Shown: piece after piece, positions 50,208 through 57,059 of the stretch | How positions within the stretch are numbered: position 1 is the first letter of the stretch | Layout: every line of letters begins with the position of its first letter | Origin: Oikopleura dioica | Taxonomy: Eukaryota > Animalia > Chordata | Assembly (NCBI GenBank): GCA_907165135.1 | Contig: OU015567.1 | Coordinates: 2,294,001 to 2,358,000 of the forward strand | DNA: 64,000 bases | Reading direction: 5' to 3' | The notes under the pieces: generated by a model | Told to the model about the DNA's origin: nothing | Databases searched by the model: none | Seen by the model: only the letters and a program-made list of their open reading frames with translations | Program-made: the position numbers and the translations under genes

Positions 50208-51880
50208 TCAGAATTCTTCTAAAACGGCGATTAACTGGTCTGATCCGCGGCAGATCGCCTTTTAGAAAGATCAAAAATGAGAGCCGAAAAACCCGATTCC
50301 TTCTCTCTGCGAGTGGCCGGTGAGCACGAGCGCGGTATAAAAGTTTGCGTTTTTGCCGAATTTAATATCAGTTTCAAGATTATCGCCGATCATCAGAGTC
50401 GATTCGGGGGCGAGGGACTTTAGCGGCTCAAAGTCGCAGCCGAAAGTGTTCGGTTTCCCAAGTGTTATCTCACATTTCGATGCAGAACAGGTCCCGATCA
50501 TCGCTACACAGGGCCCGACGTCGGGGATCAGCAGGTTACTTACAAAGCAGGTTCAATTTAGCGCTTTTTTGGGAAAGAAAAGGGAGCGGTCGCACTTTCT
50601 TGGTCTGATGTTACAGCTACCAGTCGTGGATACTGGACTTAAAGTCGGTATTCAAACCTTTTTTTACGCCGAAATCGGCTAAATTTCGAACCAAAAAGTT
50701 AACATTTTGATTGGCTAAAAATTTGAATTCAAAATTTTCAAAAAACCTTTTTTCCTGATTTTTCTCTATCTTTTCTTTTCTTAGAGATTAACTGATAGCG
50801 ATAAAACCGCCATCATAGGAAGATATAAATTCTAAGTTGTGAGAAAATGCGTATAACTACTCGTAAAAAACACCCTATTAACGAGTCTTTGAACCTTTTC
50901 TTTGAGATGCAAAACCGAGTCCAAGTTCGTCGCCATAAAAACGGCTCCTCTTTTGACATATTCCGCCGCTTTGACAATCTTGTCTAGCGTCACATCTCTA
51001 TCGAAACTGACGAGCACGTGACTGACATCTTCGTCAATTTCTATTCTTTCTAATTCGTCAAAGCTGGGCAGCTGGAAGGCTCGATCATCGAAAAGAACGC
51101 TTTTCTCGTTTCTCAAAAAGAGAAAATTAAAAAAAAAATAAATTATTCTAAAATGGGGCCATAATTAGTGGCCCGGGGTCGAAGTCCATTTTCAAATTGA
51201 AGCTATTTTTATTACAGGAAGTTGTATATTTCGAAATACGACAAGAAACAACTTGCACAATCCACATTTTTCTCGCTTGGATACCCTTATTTTCAAAAAA
51301 CGAGCCTGATATTGACTGCCTCCAATTCTTCCTTCAAACATTTTGGTCCAAGAAAATAAACTTTCTTCCCCCTCTTCAGATTCTTCTCAAAGAACTTTTG
51401 CGCTAGAAAACTTGGACATATCACTTCTGATTCTTCAGCACTCTTATGCGGCTCTAAAATTATGCAGGAGAAATGAGAAGTTTCTCTTTCTCCTTCAAGT
51501 TTCTTAAAAATGTCATGAGCCGGTCCCTAAAGCCAAGAGATTTCAACTTGCCAGCATATTCCGCTCGCGTTTTCAAAGCATTGTTCGTGAAGAAAATGAT
51601 TCTTTCGTTTCTCGTTCTCAAATCTTTCTCTCAAAAAGAGGATAGAATTGAAGAATTTTCTCAATAGTAGAGTTTCAAATCGATCGTCGAACGGTGCCTG
51701 ACTCCGCGCCTCCTTAATTCGGCCACGGTATCGATGGCTCCCGGGAGAACAGTAGACGATTTCCATAAAACCCCATCGCAATCGAAAATCACTGTTTTTA
51801 TCTGAAATTTCTTTGGAAAAAGATAGCGACTTAACATTTCAAAAACTAACACAAACGTCAAAAGAAGAGGACTCACTCAT
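50208..51880 (-). CDS. PGP: HAD class IIA phosphatase (phosphoglycolate/pyridoxal phosphatase family); ends approximate
   Basis: IFDCDGVLW, FMATNLD, TLGKPN, LMIGDNLETDIKFG, LVLTG motifs. Confidence 0.85.
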
Positions 51881-52147
51881 AATACAAAAAAAACGCTTCC
51901 TGTTTTAATTTAGATCTACTGTTTTAGTTAAAAAAAACTAAAAAATGCTAGACACATAAATGCAGCAAATCAATTCACAGTCAGATTTCATGCAAAACAC
52001 AGATGCAATTACTCTTGACACAAAATTGTCAACCTGAGACAGAGAGAGAACCATTACTGTATATTTTTAATCTGAACCTAAACGATCATTTTAATAACAA
52101 GTAATCAAGAAGCAAAAAAATTAATTGGTTTTTTTGCAGAAACGGAA

Positions 52148-55100
52148 TTAAAAGTTATCCTTCATTTGTCGCGTCTTTCCAATCACTTCGACGTCTGTTT
52201 TTCCTCCAGTAGCAGTTTTAAGGGCTTCCTCGCGATATCTCAAAAATGGATTGATTTTCTTTTCATCCCCGAATGTCGATGGGGTCGTTGGTTCTATTTC
52301 ATCGGTTGGAAAATACTCCAAAGTCGATTTATTTTGAATTGCAAAAAATGACAAACGTCGAATCGGGGAATCAAGTGTATCCGATTTTACTTTCTGTCTC
52401 GCGCTCTTGGGTTAAGCCCTTGACGATAGTGTTTCGGATTGACCTAGGCCAGCGGCGGCTTGAACTCAGCCTTAGCGGGGCTTAGCAATTCACGTTCTTT
52501 CTATTCGAAATTGAGTAGTCAGAATTCAAGCCTTGGCAACTTTCATCAGCATCTTTTTCAATATTTGATGTTTGAAATTGAATACAATACAACTAGAAGA
52601 AACACGAAATAGTTAACAATCTCGCCTTCTAAGGCAAGACACGGCGAGGCTAATCTGCTCATGACGATTTGTTCTGATCAAATATCTTTGAAATAATATG
52701 GAACCAAAGCTGATGAATTTTCCCTTTTCAAAGTAACCCTACAAAATTATAAATACAGCGAGATGTTGGGTCCATTCCATATTCTGTTCAAAATCCGGGT
52801 ATGGCAAGTCGAATGAAAATATATTAATCAAATTTAAATAGATACAAGCATTAATAGTTTTCTATAAAATTGGCTATCATAACATTGCTATAACAGTGTT
52901 AATATATTTTCATTCGACTTGCCATACCCGGATTTTGAACAGAATATGGAATGGACCCAACATCTCGCTGTATTTATAATTTTGTATGGTTACTTTGAAA
53001 AGGGAAAATTAATCTGCTTTGGTTCCATATTATTTCGAAGATATTTGATCAGAACGAATCTCGTCCAAGTCAAGGGTTGGCAATTAGGAGTCTCCTCGAT
53101 CGAGGTAAATTGATGAAACCCGATGAAAGCAGGCCAATTGTCGTCGATCCCCAGGCTGGGACCCCTATCAATAAAAAAAATGTAAATTGATCCACTGCTG
53201 TTTATGCTTGCCTAAATCTACGATTAATACTCGTGAAATTTCATGATCATTGAAAACGTTTTCGCGCGAGCATTCGTGCGAATCCGCTGGTCTTGACATT
53301 AACTCCACCTAGTGCCTTGGCTCTCGAAAGATCCCAGCGTAATCCGAGCGCCCTCTCTCCTTTCACGATGCCGTATTTAACGCAGAATACGCCGCTCAGA
53401 AATCATACTACTCGAACCAACAAATTCGAGTTTTATAAAAAAAAGCTAGAAAATGAAACTTGTTGCTGGTCTCGTCGCCTTGGCTGTAAGTGATTTTTCA
53501 GAGAAGATTGATTCGAGAAGCAAAATAAAGATACCCGGACTTTCGAATAATAAATTTTCTTTAGTCGGCCAAAGAAGTTGTCACCGAGTTCTGCGGGGCT
53601 GACCTTAACGCCGCCTACGACACAACTGGTCTCGAAATCAACTATGTGTAAGTCTAAAACCCTTTATTTAAGGGAGTAGTTCTCAGTAATGTGAACTTTC
53701 TATGGGATTTTTTCCTTCGAAATTATGGCTACTGATAAGATCCTTTGATATTGATAGAAATTTTAAAAGATCCATTTCAGTTTGACAAAGAGAAAGACCT
53801 GGGACAACCGAGACCCTGAGAAGATCCAAAAGAAGCCACGAGGACCCTCTCACTGGCGAGATGTCGTCCGAGTTGAGTGTGCCGCTCAGGGCCGAGCTCG
53901 ACCACAGAACCTCAATCCCCAGGGTGGTTATCCAGTCCAAAAGGTAAAACAACTACCTTATATTTTCACTCACTAACTATTTTCTGAAGGCTGCTCCAAT
54001 GGTCAAATGCACCCGAAAAGGACCAAGCGGATCGCAAAAGCTCAAGCCCAACTCCCGACGATACGCCCGATCAAAGATCCTCCAGTGGTACCAGGCAACC
54101 TGTATGTAAAATGTCAAGATGAAAGAAAACAACAATATAACCAAATGACCAAATGAAAAATTATATATACGTATATTGATGTTTCATAAAAAATAAATTG
54201 AATACAAAACAAAAACCACTCCTTTCTTTCAGAAAAATACAACCCATATGTACATTCTTCATTGCCTTCAGCAGGAAATTAAACCTCTTGAACTCAAATT
54301 AAAGAGTAGATTCAGATAAAAGACGCATCAAGGCAGAGTTACCGGAGTTAACCTCTTACCCCCTCTCGCGTTCAAATGAGAGTCGAAGTCGTATCACTAA
54401 CGGGTTAATCCCCCACCGATTAGCTAATCAGAGTATAAAACCGCTTGCATATACACATTTTCGGTAAACGAAGAAACTTGTCTTCGAAAAAAGAAAGCGA
54501 TGAAGTTTTTCGCAGGACTCGTTCTTGCTGCGCAAGCAAGTACCAATATTGCACTTGGCACGCTTGTTGACAACTGGTGCGGATTCGACCTCCACGATTT
54601 TTACGAGACTACAGGACTTGCTCTTGAATACCGGTAAGGGGAAACTAGAGAATTCCGCCAAAAGAGAACATTTTTGTTATGATTTTATAGGAAAAGGAAT
54701 GACATATGATATTTAAATTTCCAACAAGGAAAATGAGGGAAAACTTTGAAAACTCTTGAACGAAACTTCGAGATCTTGCTCGATATTGAGACCCCCCTTT
54801 GAACCTATCGTATTAAGAGTGAAGCCCCGAAAGACCTGGGAAAACCGAGACGAGGAGAAGATCGCCAAGCGACCACGAGGGCCATCCCACTACCGAGACG
54901 TCGTCCGAGTCAACTGCGCTGTCAACACCCGTGGCGGCAGCAACCACGAGAACTTCACTCCACTTGGTGGTTACCCAACCCAAAAGATCGCCCCAATGGT
55001 CAAGTGCACCCGAAAGGGGCCAAACGGCACCCAGAAGCTCAAGCCCAACGCTCGAAGATGGAGAGGAAACAAAATCGTCGACTGGTATCAGAAAAACTGC

Positions 55101-57059
55101 TTGTAACTCATCCTTTTACTTTCTACCTAATAAATATAGCCCTCAAAAAGTGCTCTTTATTCTCGTGAAGTCAGTTGTAAAACTCAAAAAGGAACACGTG
55201 AGCCGGAATAGTTAACTGGTCTTTGCTAATCCAGTGACACCGTAATTTAAGAGCTCAGGGAAAATGCAGGTGAAAGCACTTCTAATTTAGACTAATCCCC
55301 AGAACCTCTCGGTTTTCCAACGGGAATATAAAAAGCCATACGCGGCGGTTTCAGGAACTAAATCATCATCAGTCCGGGAAATATTCAGGACAGAGAAATA
55401 TCAAAAAAAAAATGAAACTTGCTTTTGGTCTTTTTGCATTTTCCGTAAGTCTTTAAAAACAGGCAAAGATATGGCTGATATTCTTAATTTCAGGCTGCTG
55501 AAGTCATCACTTCCTGGTGCGGAGAAGATGATTTGAACGCATATTACAACACAACAGGACTCGATATTGAGTACTAGTAAGTCTGAAAGCAGAATATCTC
55601 CAACTATGAGCGTTTTCCTAAATAAAATCCTCTTAGCATGTCCAAAAGAAAGACCTGGGCAAACAGAGACCCCGAAAAGGTCCAACAACGACCAAAAACC
55701 CCTGCTCATTACAGAGACGTCGTCAAGGTCCGATGCGGTGCTCAAGCTCGACGAGGCTACAATTCTGAACCTCTTGGATCCTGGCCCGTTCGAAAGGTTC
55801 TTTCAGTAAACACCTAGCTTCTACTAACAACTGTTTACTAGCAATCACCAATGATCAAATGCACCCGAAAAGGACCCGGTGGTGTTCAAAAACTCAAACC
55901 CAATGGTCGACGATTCTTCCAGTCCAAGGTTCAACTCTGGTTCCAGCAGACCTGTGCTTAAAATATTCTCCTCTGATGGGATTCTGGTATTTCTCTCTGT
56001 TCAAAACAAATAAGAATAAAACATCAAATTTTTAACCGATTGCCTGAGATTTCTCGAAGATCGGACACTTCCTTCTGTCGCGCCTTGAGATCTTCGTTTG
56101 ATGGATCGACAGATAGAGCGAATCGGATGTTTGAGGCGGAATATTCATGCGCAAAGTACATTTTGTCATCATCGGAAACAGAGGAGAGTATATGTTCGAC
56201 TGTAGTTAACAGTTCTTCGGGCGTTCCTAAAAGAATGGTTCAAGATTTTTCACGTAGATAGAGGAGATGATTCCACTTATTTCGTAGTTAATCATGGTCA
56301 AAAAGGATTATTGATACCCAAAAACTTGAGTTTACTGAAGTTACTGAAGTAAACCTGTTTTTCAAATCCGCTCACCTTCAAATAATCGTCCACAACCAGC
56401 ATTAAACAACGTATCTCCGACAAAAACAGCCGCTTCACCACTGCTTGACTGGACAATGTACGTACTAAATTCTTTTTCTATCTTCTATGCGGAGTAGTTA
56501 TTTACCTATGGCCCGTTGTATGACAGGGAGTATGAAGAACTTTAACATCCAATCCACAAACGGACAAGTCCTGAACCGCTTTCTTCTCCAATTGATTAGT
56601 TATTCCGTGAATTCTTTCGTCCAAGCCAAAAACTTCTAGCTGTGGATAAAGTCGCTTCAGTGGAATGTTCCCTCCATCGTGATCAGCGTGATGGTGGGTG
56701 CAGAGGATTGTCTCAAGAGAAGTTCCGAGGCCGATGGTTTCGTGGGCGATTCGTTTGTGATCGACGGGGTCGATGGCGAAGGCTCGTTTCGAATTGACTG
56801 GCTTCACGAGGTACATGAAGTTGTCGCTAGAAAGATTGATTAGGCCCTTCCTTCTTATAGGAAAGAACCTGAGTGAGGGAACAATAGTGACAGTAAAGTC
56901 GCCATGATCGACAGTCTTGACTTTCGAGTGACCCTTGATCATATCTGTACTGCTTCGACGACTCATTCTATACTGACTCGTCACCCGTAGAAAGGAATTG
57001 GCGACGTCGGAGGCGCCGAACGTTTGAACTGCTTTGTTGCGCAAAAAGCTGATTATCAT
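52148..57059 (-). CDS. PNKD: Hydroxyacylglutathione hydrolase family metallo-beta-lactamase, PNKD-like
   Basis: KGHSK N-terminal motif (PNKD-like), SDNFMYL, LCTHHHADHDGGN, TPCHTTGH, GDTLFNAGCGRLFEG, AHEY, and last exon EPTTPSTFGDEKKINPFLR at 52148-52293 after a 3750-nt GC-AG intron. PNKD versus HAGH orthology is tentative. Confidence 0.85.
52666..53060. repeat. Long near-perfect palindrome (MITE-like), 162-bp arms
   Basis: 52666-52827 is the reverse complement of 52899-53060 with a few mismatches; 71-bp loop. Confidence 0.85.
53453..54109 (+). CDS. Small secreted basic 4-Cys protein, paralogue A (family not recognised)
   Basis: 4 exons: MKLVAGLVALASAKEVVTEFCGADLNAAYDTTGLEINYVLTKRKTWDNRDPEKIQKKPRGPSHWRDVVRVECAAQG...PMVKCTRKGPSGSQKLKPNSRRYARSKILQWYQATCM*. 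Confidence 0.85.
54500..55106 (+). CDS. Small secreted basic 4-Cys protein, paralogue B
   Basis: 2 exons: MKFFAGLVLAAQA...WCGFDLHDFYETTGL...RKTWENRDEEKIAKRPRGPSHYRDVVRVNC...PMVKCTRKGPNGTQKLKPNARRWRGNKIVDWYQKNCL*. Confidence 0.85.
55412..55961 (+). CDS. Small secreted basic 4-Cys protein, paralogue C
   Basis: 4 exons: MKLAFGLFAFSAAEVITSWCGEDDLNAYYNTTGL...RKTWANRDPEKVQQRPKTPAHYRDVVKVRC...PMIKCTRKGPGGVQKLKPNGRRFFQSKVQLWFQQTCA*. Confidence 0.85.

Follow-up and report, generated by a model that had tools for sequence, protein, structure and literature searches.

The window, a stretch of 64,000 nucleotides of Okinawa-type Oikopleura dioica DNA, contains a glyoxalase II-type gene on the minus strand and, in the last intron of that gene, three tandem paralogues (A, B and C) on the plus strand. 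The first large exon of the host gene (56502-57059) encodes a metallo-beta-lactamase core with the metal motif THHHADH. Downstream lie the penultimate coding exon (56044-56226; ...TPEELL...DLREIS + G), which has 87% identity to the North Atlantic copy, and the last coding exon (52148-52293, stop included; (E)PTTPSTFGDEKKINPFLRYRE...KDNF*), which matches positions 36-83 of HAGH_C (E 9.4e-14) and has 87% identity in the North Atlantic contig L018. The last intron (52294-56043, minus strand) is 3750 nt long and in phase 1, with a GC donor at 56043-56042 and an AG acceptor at 52295-52294. The host thus combines a metallo-beta-lactamase core carrying a THxHxDH-type motif with HAGH_C, as expected of a glyoxalase II, and among solved structures it is closest to human hydroxyacylglutathione hydrolase (1QH3, E 1e-20). 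It shares these three features with the HAGH and PNKD proteins but has an extra N-terminal extension of ~75 aa; it is placed at the HAGH/PNKD level.

Paralogue C (53453-54109, plus strand; OKI2018_I69 chr2.g4506, 132 aa) has four exons (53453-53485, 53565-53647, 53781-53943 and 53990-54109, stop included) and is identical in sequence to the public model P0027. Paralogue B (54500-55106, plus strand; chr2.g4507, 140 aa) has two exons (54500-54633 and 54818-55106) and is 99-100% identical to the public model P0001. Paralogue A (55412-55961, plus strand; chr2.g4508, 131 aa) has four exons (55412-55444, 55494-55576, 55637-55796 and 55842-55961) and is identical to the public model P0008. The pieces of the window were searched exon by exon, and full-length analyses were run on the three public models, with which the exon models are concordant. 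The three genes are thus already public as uncharacterised hypothetical proteins of Okinawa-type O. dioica. The C junctions are also supported by a spliced C-type cDNA contig (L015) from which all introns have been removed. B lacks intron 1, whose position is inside the signal peptide, and intron 3, as the initial annotation had said of two introns present in A and C. Intron 3 is kept in the North Atlantic B orthologue; therefore, its loss is specific to the Okinawa lineage.

Each gene has its own promoter. Upstream of A, TAATCC at 55293 is followed by TATAAAAA at 55327 (55293-55334, plus strand). The same layout, TAATCC and then a TATA-like element after 24-34 nt, is found 5' of B (54406 and 54434), and 5' of C (53340, followed by TATTTAA at ~53372), and the A and B orthologues of the North Atlantic lineage have it as well. 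TAATCC is presumably a promoter element of the K50-homeodomain type. A scan for bacterial-type promoters and terminators gave background levels and has no bearing on a eukaryote. The poly(A) signal of A (AATAAA, 56016-56021, plus strand) is ~25 nt from the host splice donor, a position which suggests that A ends right beside the host exon or runs into it in antisense. The intron also holds a 395-nt foldback (52666-53060) between the host last exon and C, with 162-nt arms that are 97% complementary and a 71-nt loop. It is present in a single copy in this genome, which excludes a multi-copy MITE.

The boundaries of the host intron read TCAG|GCAATC...AAATAG|AA, and a Glu codon (GAA) is formed across the junction. 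The HAGH_C profile is split exactly by the intron, with positions 1-32 before it (E 1.5e-7) and positions 36-83 after it. Since the profile is continuous across the intron, the intron is taken to be real, and the antisense nest in a long GC-AG last intron of a PNKD-like gene stands as first described. The donor is CAG|GCAATC here and CAG|GAAATC in the North Atlantic contigs L006 and L016 (GC vs GA), within a context, CAG|G(C/A)AATCGGTTAAAAA, that is conserved between the lineages. The acceptor AG and the phase of 1 are conserved in L018, where the junction Glu codon is GAG rather than GAA. The intron is accordingly of the non-canonical G*-AG class, with a non-GT donor, an AG acceptor and a maintained frame. 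The North Atlantic gene order is host last exon, C' and B in L018; B, A and the upstream host exons in L006; and A and the penultimate host exon in L016. An arrangement without true nesting, in which the host mRNA ends just past 56044 (read-through ...REISGNRLKI*) and exon 52148-52293 is a relic, agrees with an old Norwegian model (234 aa, L006 11557-12689) that continues past the donor as far as the next stop, but is highly improbable given that this exon encodes half of HAGH_C (E 9e-14), has 87% protein identity in L018 although synonymous sites elsewhere are saturated, and keeps its phase and acceptor together with the conserved donor context. A host transcript ending near 56020, which had been named as the case that removes the nesting, is likewise unlikely, since the downstream exon is the C-terminal half of HAGH_C and the order is kept in the North Atlantic. 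As judged from exon order and reading frame, A, B and C are nested antisense in the last host intron, and the nested triplet predates the split between the Okinawa and North Atlantic lineages.

In animals, nested genes are commonplace; typical O. dioica introns are a few tens of nucleotides long, and the genomes of the cryptic O. dioica species are heavily rearranged. As in other animal nests, each guest is a complete gene with a promoter and a poly(A) signal of its own, and the host is an unrelated housekeeping gene. This nest differs in having three paralogues in one 3750-nt intron and in being kept between lineages whose synonymous sites are saturated. The GC or GA donor with an AG acceptor is shared with other non-canonical introns of O. 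dioica, where such non-GT donors are frequent (PMC7072748). The giant intron of the initial annotation is thus real, but the surprise attached to it was overstated, both for the donor and for the nesting. A rearrangement that broke the intron would destroy the host gene, and this constraint may account for the persistence of the block. Apart from possible antisense interference, the nesting itself probably plays no mechanistic part.

An HMM search of 1.84 billion protein representatives returned 21 matches, all from O. dioica or marine contigs. The family totals ~20-30 sequences, and its sources are only O. dioica or unassigned marine environmental contigs. This genome has four copies; the initial annotation was right about the three nested members but not about a total of three, as a fourth copy (D) is on another chromosome. 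Against the North Atlantic homologues, dN/dS, calculated as sums over separate exons, is 0.15 for A, 0.07 for B and 0.12 for C, with dS >1 (saturated), and between copies it ranges from 0.07 to 0.30. Transcripts of the family are present among the Tara MERC sequences (P0004, P0009, P0010, P0016, P0030, P0039 and P0040), and a divergent member (L010) is a SMART-seq cDNA. The repeats D1-D3, the dN/dS values and the orthologues in other lineages make the gene triplet more than chance. A, B and C are real, functional and separately promoted genes, and they belong to a conserved, transcribed orphan family restricted to O. dioica and larvacean-like marine sequences. Literature searches with all family accessions and gene ids found no mention of them, and a single-cell preprint and the house proteome paper contained nothing traceable to these genes. 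The description of the genes, the family and the nest as a whole is held with high confidence.

The three proteins have 131-140 aa, a short candidate signal peptide and four invariant Cys, and share the motifs TTGL, RKTWxNRD, H(W/Y)RDVV, PM(V/I)KCTRKGP and QKLKPN. The sequence and the public models agree with the earlier description of three secreted-looking, Lys/Arg-rich plus-strand paralogues, and the Cys and the motifs listed there (with PMxKCTRKGP) are all present. The exon-delimited N-terminal module (~29 aa) is acidic, with a net charge of -1 to -6, and holds the first Cys and TTGL. The basic module (~92 aa, net +15 to +18) holds the other three Cys and the motifs RKTWxNRD, HWRDVVRVxC, GGYP, PMIKCTRKGP and KLKPNxRR. 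The mature proteins would have a pI of ~9.9, a net charge of +11 to +13 and a Lys+Arg content of 18-19%, and the Cys are spaced by ~50, 29 and 31 residues. All full-length members, including the divergent ones, start with MK, 9-11 hydrophobic residues and A-x-A. The distance to the first A-x-A (~12-14 residues) lies towards the lower limit of what is usual for signal peptides. The proteins are predicted, with good confidence, to be secreted. B has two basic stretches of the Cardin-Weintraub pattern, AKRPRG and ARRWRG, the second of which is not kept in A and C; motifs of this type are weak predictors.

No exon-encoded piece of A, B or C had a Pfam match above threshold. An Orthopox_F8 row (E 0.014; 15.9 bits vs a cut-off of 25) was rejected as a compositional effect. 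The family profile had no match to PDB sequences at E up to 10 and no significant match to known antimicrobial or heparin-binding Pfam families (defensins, WAP, midkine/PTN and others). An initial AF2 model of P0001, made with the signal peptide included and 15 alignment rows, had a pLDDT of 42 and was unusable; a second (P0030, 26 rows) reached a pLDDT of 71 and a pTM of 0.63, which is moderate confidence only. Structural searches with this model gave noise in the PDB (Foldseek best E 2.6; VIA wide best Z 2.8), in the Atlas (best TM 0.44) and among viral models in BFVD (best E 0.69), and ESM Atlas feature searches with P0001 and P0011 gave nothing usable. The Foldseek search matched no characterised family, and the searches by Pfam, PDB sequence and structure were all blank, in agreement with the absence of a recognisable domain noted at the outset. 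In having four Cys, the last of them closely preceded by a Trp, the proteins are reminiscent of Sushi/CCP modules, and several CCP structures are among the weak structural rows, but there is no Sushi Pfam match even at E 10 and the AF2 model ends in a helix. The Cys spacing of CCP modules is also far narrower than that of the family. The Sushi/CCP fold was rejected at Z 2.1-2.4, since the search tool itself gives 7-8 as the usual best Z of a model that matches nothing clearly. As far as the predicted model goes, the fold and function of the family match nothing known.

The proteins, predicted to be secreted, may fold as one small disulfide-bonded alpha/beta domain, and the conserved basic motifs would bind a polyanion outside the cell. 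The likeliest partner would be a proteoglycan or a sulfated glycosaminoglycan; one example is heparan sulfate, which the pre-house requires for its inflation (PMC3390340). Through polyanion binding, the family proteins might cross-link, condense or decorate the secreted matrix. Binding to a polyanion or the matrix is a tentative assignment of function. The account as a whole, a nested secreted family that binds an extracellular polyanion and is perhaps linked to the house, is the best explanation, with a probability that falls a little short of even.

The oikosins, to which the initial annotation tentatively likened the family, are among the closest known systems. Like this family, they are lineage-restricted secreted proteins of O. 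dioica with tandem duplicates, high expression is likely for both, and house heparan sulfate is a possible target for a polycation (Hosp et al. 2012, PMC3390340). About half of the oikosins likewise have no known domain, and the family is not named among the 80 house proteins identified by mass spectrometry (PMC3390340). In the part of the oikosin in situ primer table that was compared by eye, no primer resembled the A or B coding sequence. Clusters at 90% identity that hold the A, B and C types of Norwegian and Okinawan O. dioica contain no oikosin name or accession, only 'unnamed protein product', 'Uncharacterized protein' or OKI2018 model names; in this respect the family differs from the oikosins. 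Small proteins very rich in Lys and Arg yield tiny tryptic peptides and could escape standard house proteomics.

The proteins could instead be host-defence effectors, the other candidate of the initial annotation. In that case, cationic proteins with disulfide bonds would be secreted to agglutinate or kill microbes in the gut, at the epithelium or at the filters of the house, and the acidic module would neutralise the cationic part during export. Like defensins and big defensins, they are small, have a predicted signal peptide, carry an even number of Cys (four here) and a high positive charge (net +11 to +15), and come in tandem multigene clusters. The anionic-then-cationic layout, in which K-R or P-R immediately precedes RKTW, is like that of antimicrobial precursors, and an innate-defence role has been proposed for the house (PMC3390340). 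However, the family has no similarity to these proteins in sequence or fold, no Pfam match and no amphipathic-helix or defensin-like signature, and its mature proteins (~120 aa) are larger than most. It is also strongly conserved, unlike many fast-evolving antimicrobial genes; the purifying selection (dN/dS 0.07-0.15) and the long conserved motifs point to a specific partner and not to generic membrane attack. Since the first Cys is in the acidic module, only three Cys, an odd number, would remain once that module was removed. A defence function is considered unlikely.

A role as secreted signalling ligands or prohormone-like precursors, which would target a receptor and might first be cleaved at basic sites, is improbable. 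The motif conservation is unusually high for an orphan family, there are several dibasic sites (KRK, RR), and a TATA-type promoter for each gene with a common TAATCC suggests tight cell-type control. Conservation over the whole length and four Cys across both modules nevertheless fit one folded domain better than released peptides, and the sequences contain neither amidation signals nor repeats of a peptide unit. The repeated assembly of family members in bulk ocean metatranscriptomes also suggests abundant mRNA, which is less typical of ligands. Intracellular nucleic-acid binding, for example by chromatin or sperm nuclear proteins whose hydrophobic N-terminus is not a signal peptide, would suit the very basic charge and the top Foldseek rows (dsRNA-binding domains, alpha-beta-beta-beta-alpha; E 2.7-9.6), but these rows are at noise level (TM 0.18), which led to rejection of that fold, and the M-K-hydrophobic(10)-A-x-A start, conserved in all full-length members including divergent ones, and four conserved Cys suited to an oxidising compartment make it very improbable.

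The extracellular polyanion-binding account also has a bolder form, in which the proteins would have a new, larvacean-born fold and act as dedicated polycationic partners for cellulose or sulfated proteoglycans in the house. They would be a missing class of house component, invisible to trypsin-based methods, with genes co-regulated through TAATCC and locked in the intron. They might then keep the pre-house condensed until inflation or cross-link the filter meshes, and the three genes would be held together by the lock inside the intron of an essential gene. This full combination is improbable.

O. dioica is already known to have orphan secreted genes, nested genes and introns with non-GT donors, and if the function is generic, this is one more orphan gene family and nothing beyond. 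The locus itself illustrates cleanly how a nested block can be kept between lineages whose synonymous sites are saturated, and how the donor of one orthologous intron can differ, GC in one lineage and GA in the other. The houses of larvaceans are important for carbon flux in the ocean, and orphans make up about half of the house proteins known so far. The proteins are small and easy to express and test, and standard tryptic proteomics would tend to miss them. Strong conservation, apparently abundant transcription, predicted secretion, a polycationic character and the lack of outside relatives together make the family a candidate for a matrix-organising or defence component that has so far gone unrecognised.

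The host gene on the minus strand contains a THHHADH motif and matches human HAGH (1QH3) with an E value of 1e-20; it is a member of the glyoxalase II family. The Pfam HAGH_C domain is split between two of its exons: exon 56044-56226 matches profile positions 1-32 and exon 52148-52293 matches positions 36-83. This sharing of one profile indicates, on sequence grounds, that the two exons encode one protein and that the 3750-nt intron between them (52294-56043) is real. The long GC-AG intron proposed in the initial annotation is supported, with boundaries CAG/GCAATC...AAATAG/AA, phase 1 in a Glu codon, and HAGH_C continuing across it. Non-GT donors are frequent in O. dioica (PMC7072748), so the GC donor of this intron is ordinary here. 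The host donor in North Atlantic O. dioica is CAG/GAAATC (contigs L006 and L016), and the acceptor and phase are conserved (L018). In the old Norwegian annotation the host model (234 aa) reads through the donor, and an assembly gap accounts for its lack of the last exon. A minus-strand HAD-family (Hydrolase_6-like) gene with an FDCDGVLW motif (51460-51900) starts approximately 270 nt downstream of the host stop codon and is also the neighbour in the Norwegian scaffold FN653426.1.

The intron holds three plus-strand genes, modelled by sequence reading and per-exon translation. Gene C has exons at 53453-53485, 53565-53647, 53781-53943 and 53990-54109; gene B at 54500-54633 and 54818-55106; and gene A at 55412-55444, 55494-55576, 55637-55796 and 55842-55961. 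All three are already public as hypothetical proteins, and the conceptual splices of C, B and A equal the public models P0027 (g4506, 132 aa), P0001 (g4507, 140 aa) and P0008 (g4508, 131 aa). The window belongs to the Okinawa type of O. dioica; exon 2 of gene B matches the NCBI model Oidioi.mRNA.OKI2018_I69.chr2.g4507 at 99% identity. Window pieces were searched per exon, and whole-protein analyses were based on the three public models. The shared motifs and four invariant Cys claimed earlier were all found in A, B and C. The claim that B lacks two introns was also borne out; it has neither intron 3 nor intron 1, which falls within the signal peptide. In the North Atlantic B orthologue intron 3 is present and ~40 nt long (L006 10377-10414; likewise L018); Okinawa B lacks it at 54989-54990. 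Its retention in the North Atlantic points to a loss specific to the Okinawa lineage. The difference can also be phrased as a lineage-specific loss or gain between cryptic species.

Each of the three genes has its own TATA-like box, with TAATCC 24-34 nt upstream of the box, and its own AATAAA signal. TAATCC occurs upstream of TATA-like boxes at 53340, 54406, 55227 and 55293 in the window and at ~9914 and ~10814 in the Norwegian scaffold piece L006; its expected count in the window is 0.12 per 300 bp. This hexamer is the consensus bound by K50 paired-type homeodomain factors of the Otx, Pitx and Gsc class. In the North Atlantic A and B orthologues the distance between TAATCC and the TATA-like box is conserved despite saturated synonymous sites. 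The AATAAA of gene A (56016-56021) is ~25 nt from the host splice donor.

The dN/dS between Okinawa and North Atlantic homologues, with counts added up across separate exons, is 0.15 for A, 0.07 for B and 0.12 for C, and dS is greater than 1 in all three. Transcripts are also available. In the contig L015 a C-type ORF is fully spliced, and its junctions match those placed in the window models. The family also includes several Tara MERC metatranscriptome proteins, and L010 is a SMART-seq cDNA of a divergent member with a template-switch oligo at its 5' end. Based on dN/dS and transcripts, A, B and C are functional genes. One B-like Tara MERC transcript (P0004, ERR1711894_414589) is without the segment KRPRGPSHYRDVVRVNCAVNT, which includes the second Cys. 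Alternative splicing, a further paralogue or an error of assembly may account for this transcript.

The nest also occurs in North Atlantic O. dioica. On the metagenome contig L018 the last host exon, at 87% identity, stands contiguously with a C-type gene and B; this contig is 97.6% identical to L006 over a 1251-nt overlap. Beyond this overlap L006 continues with B, A and upstream host exons, and in L016 A adjoins the penultimate host exon. Pieced together, these three contigs show the gene order of the window. A second North Atlantic locus (L013 9518-10816; L020 2189-3484; also L015) has a HAD-type hydrolase, a diverged last host exon, a C-type gene and a convergent tyrosylprotein-sulfotransferase-like gene. 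Its copy of the last HAGH exon is 66% identical with the N-terminal part missing, and the Okinawa sulfotransferase orthologue is at C5:2075633-2077144, ~270 kb away. This locus looks like a segmental duplication plus rearrangement.

The part of the host intron that separates the last host exon from gene C contains a near-perfect foldback of 395 nt (52666-53060), with 162-nt arms that are 97% complementary and a 71-nt loop. This genome has only the one copy, which rules out a multi-copy MITE. The foldback could be a source of hairpin RNA, a relic or an assembly artefact.

This genome (64.3 Mb, 19 contigs) has exactly four family members: A, B, C and D. Gene D is on another chromosome (G000:C1:2215517-2216225; L002 1038-1746), has two exons like B, and contains a ~30-aa Lys/Gly/Trp-rich insertion after RKTW. 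Instead of TAATCC, D has a variant (GATCCCC/GCAATCC). The last Cys has been lost from a D-like environmental exon (P0015). When 1.84 billion representatives were searched with the family profile, 21 proteins were returned, and word searches supplied a few more. Every family sequence found comes either from O. dioica or from a short marine contig of metagenomic or metatranscriptomic origin. The tree has an A clade (100/99) and a B+D clade (100/99), with C-type sequences placed beside them, without resolution, inside the O. dioica group. Outside the O. dioica clade falls a set of divergent environmental sequences, which presumably represent other larvaceans.

The proteins have a short signal-like N-terminus, an acidic module and a basic module. 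The acidic module (~29 aa, net charge -1 to -6) corresponds to exon 2 in A and C. The basic module (~92 aa) has 22-25 Lys+Arg and a net charge of +15 to +18, and the mature protein as a whole has a pI of 9.8-10.1. The exon-encoded pieces of A, B and C matched no Pfam family, the family profile matched no PDB sequence, and Atlas feature searches found nothing. AF2 gave a pLDDT of 42 with 15 alignment rows. With 26 rows and the mature-like target P0030, it gave a pLDDT of 71.3 and a pTM of 0.63 for a model of four main strands and a C-terminal helix. This model had no match by Foldseek in the PDB (best E 2.6), in VIA wide (best Z 2.8), among Atlas structures (TM <=0.44) or in BFVD (best E 0.69). 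Weak rows for dsRBD and CCP are noise according to the tools' own guidance.

The favoured, though tentative, reading is that A, B and C are putative extracellular polyanion binders. It is favoured because the basic motifs are conserved and B has two stretches with the Cardin-Weintraub pattern, because the strong conservation implies a specific partner, and because the mRNA is apparently abundant in bulk ocean samples. House inflation requires heparan sulfate proteoglycans (PMC3390340), which also favours this reading. An antimicrobial role for these secreted-looking basic proteins is a somewhat weaker candidate, and a signalling role is doubtful. Intracellular nucleic-acid binding is very improbable. 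None of the family's protein clusters bears an oikosin name, which makes it less likely that the family is a known oikosin. A putative house role is compatible with the missing name because Lys/Arg-rich proteins are poor tryptic targets.

Nested genes, non-GT introns and families of orphan secreted proteins are each already known from O. dioica. New are the recognition that these proteins form a conserved family, seen to date in O. dioica and unassigned marine contigs alone and lacking any detectable fold relative, and the conservation of its three-gene nest.
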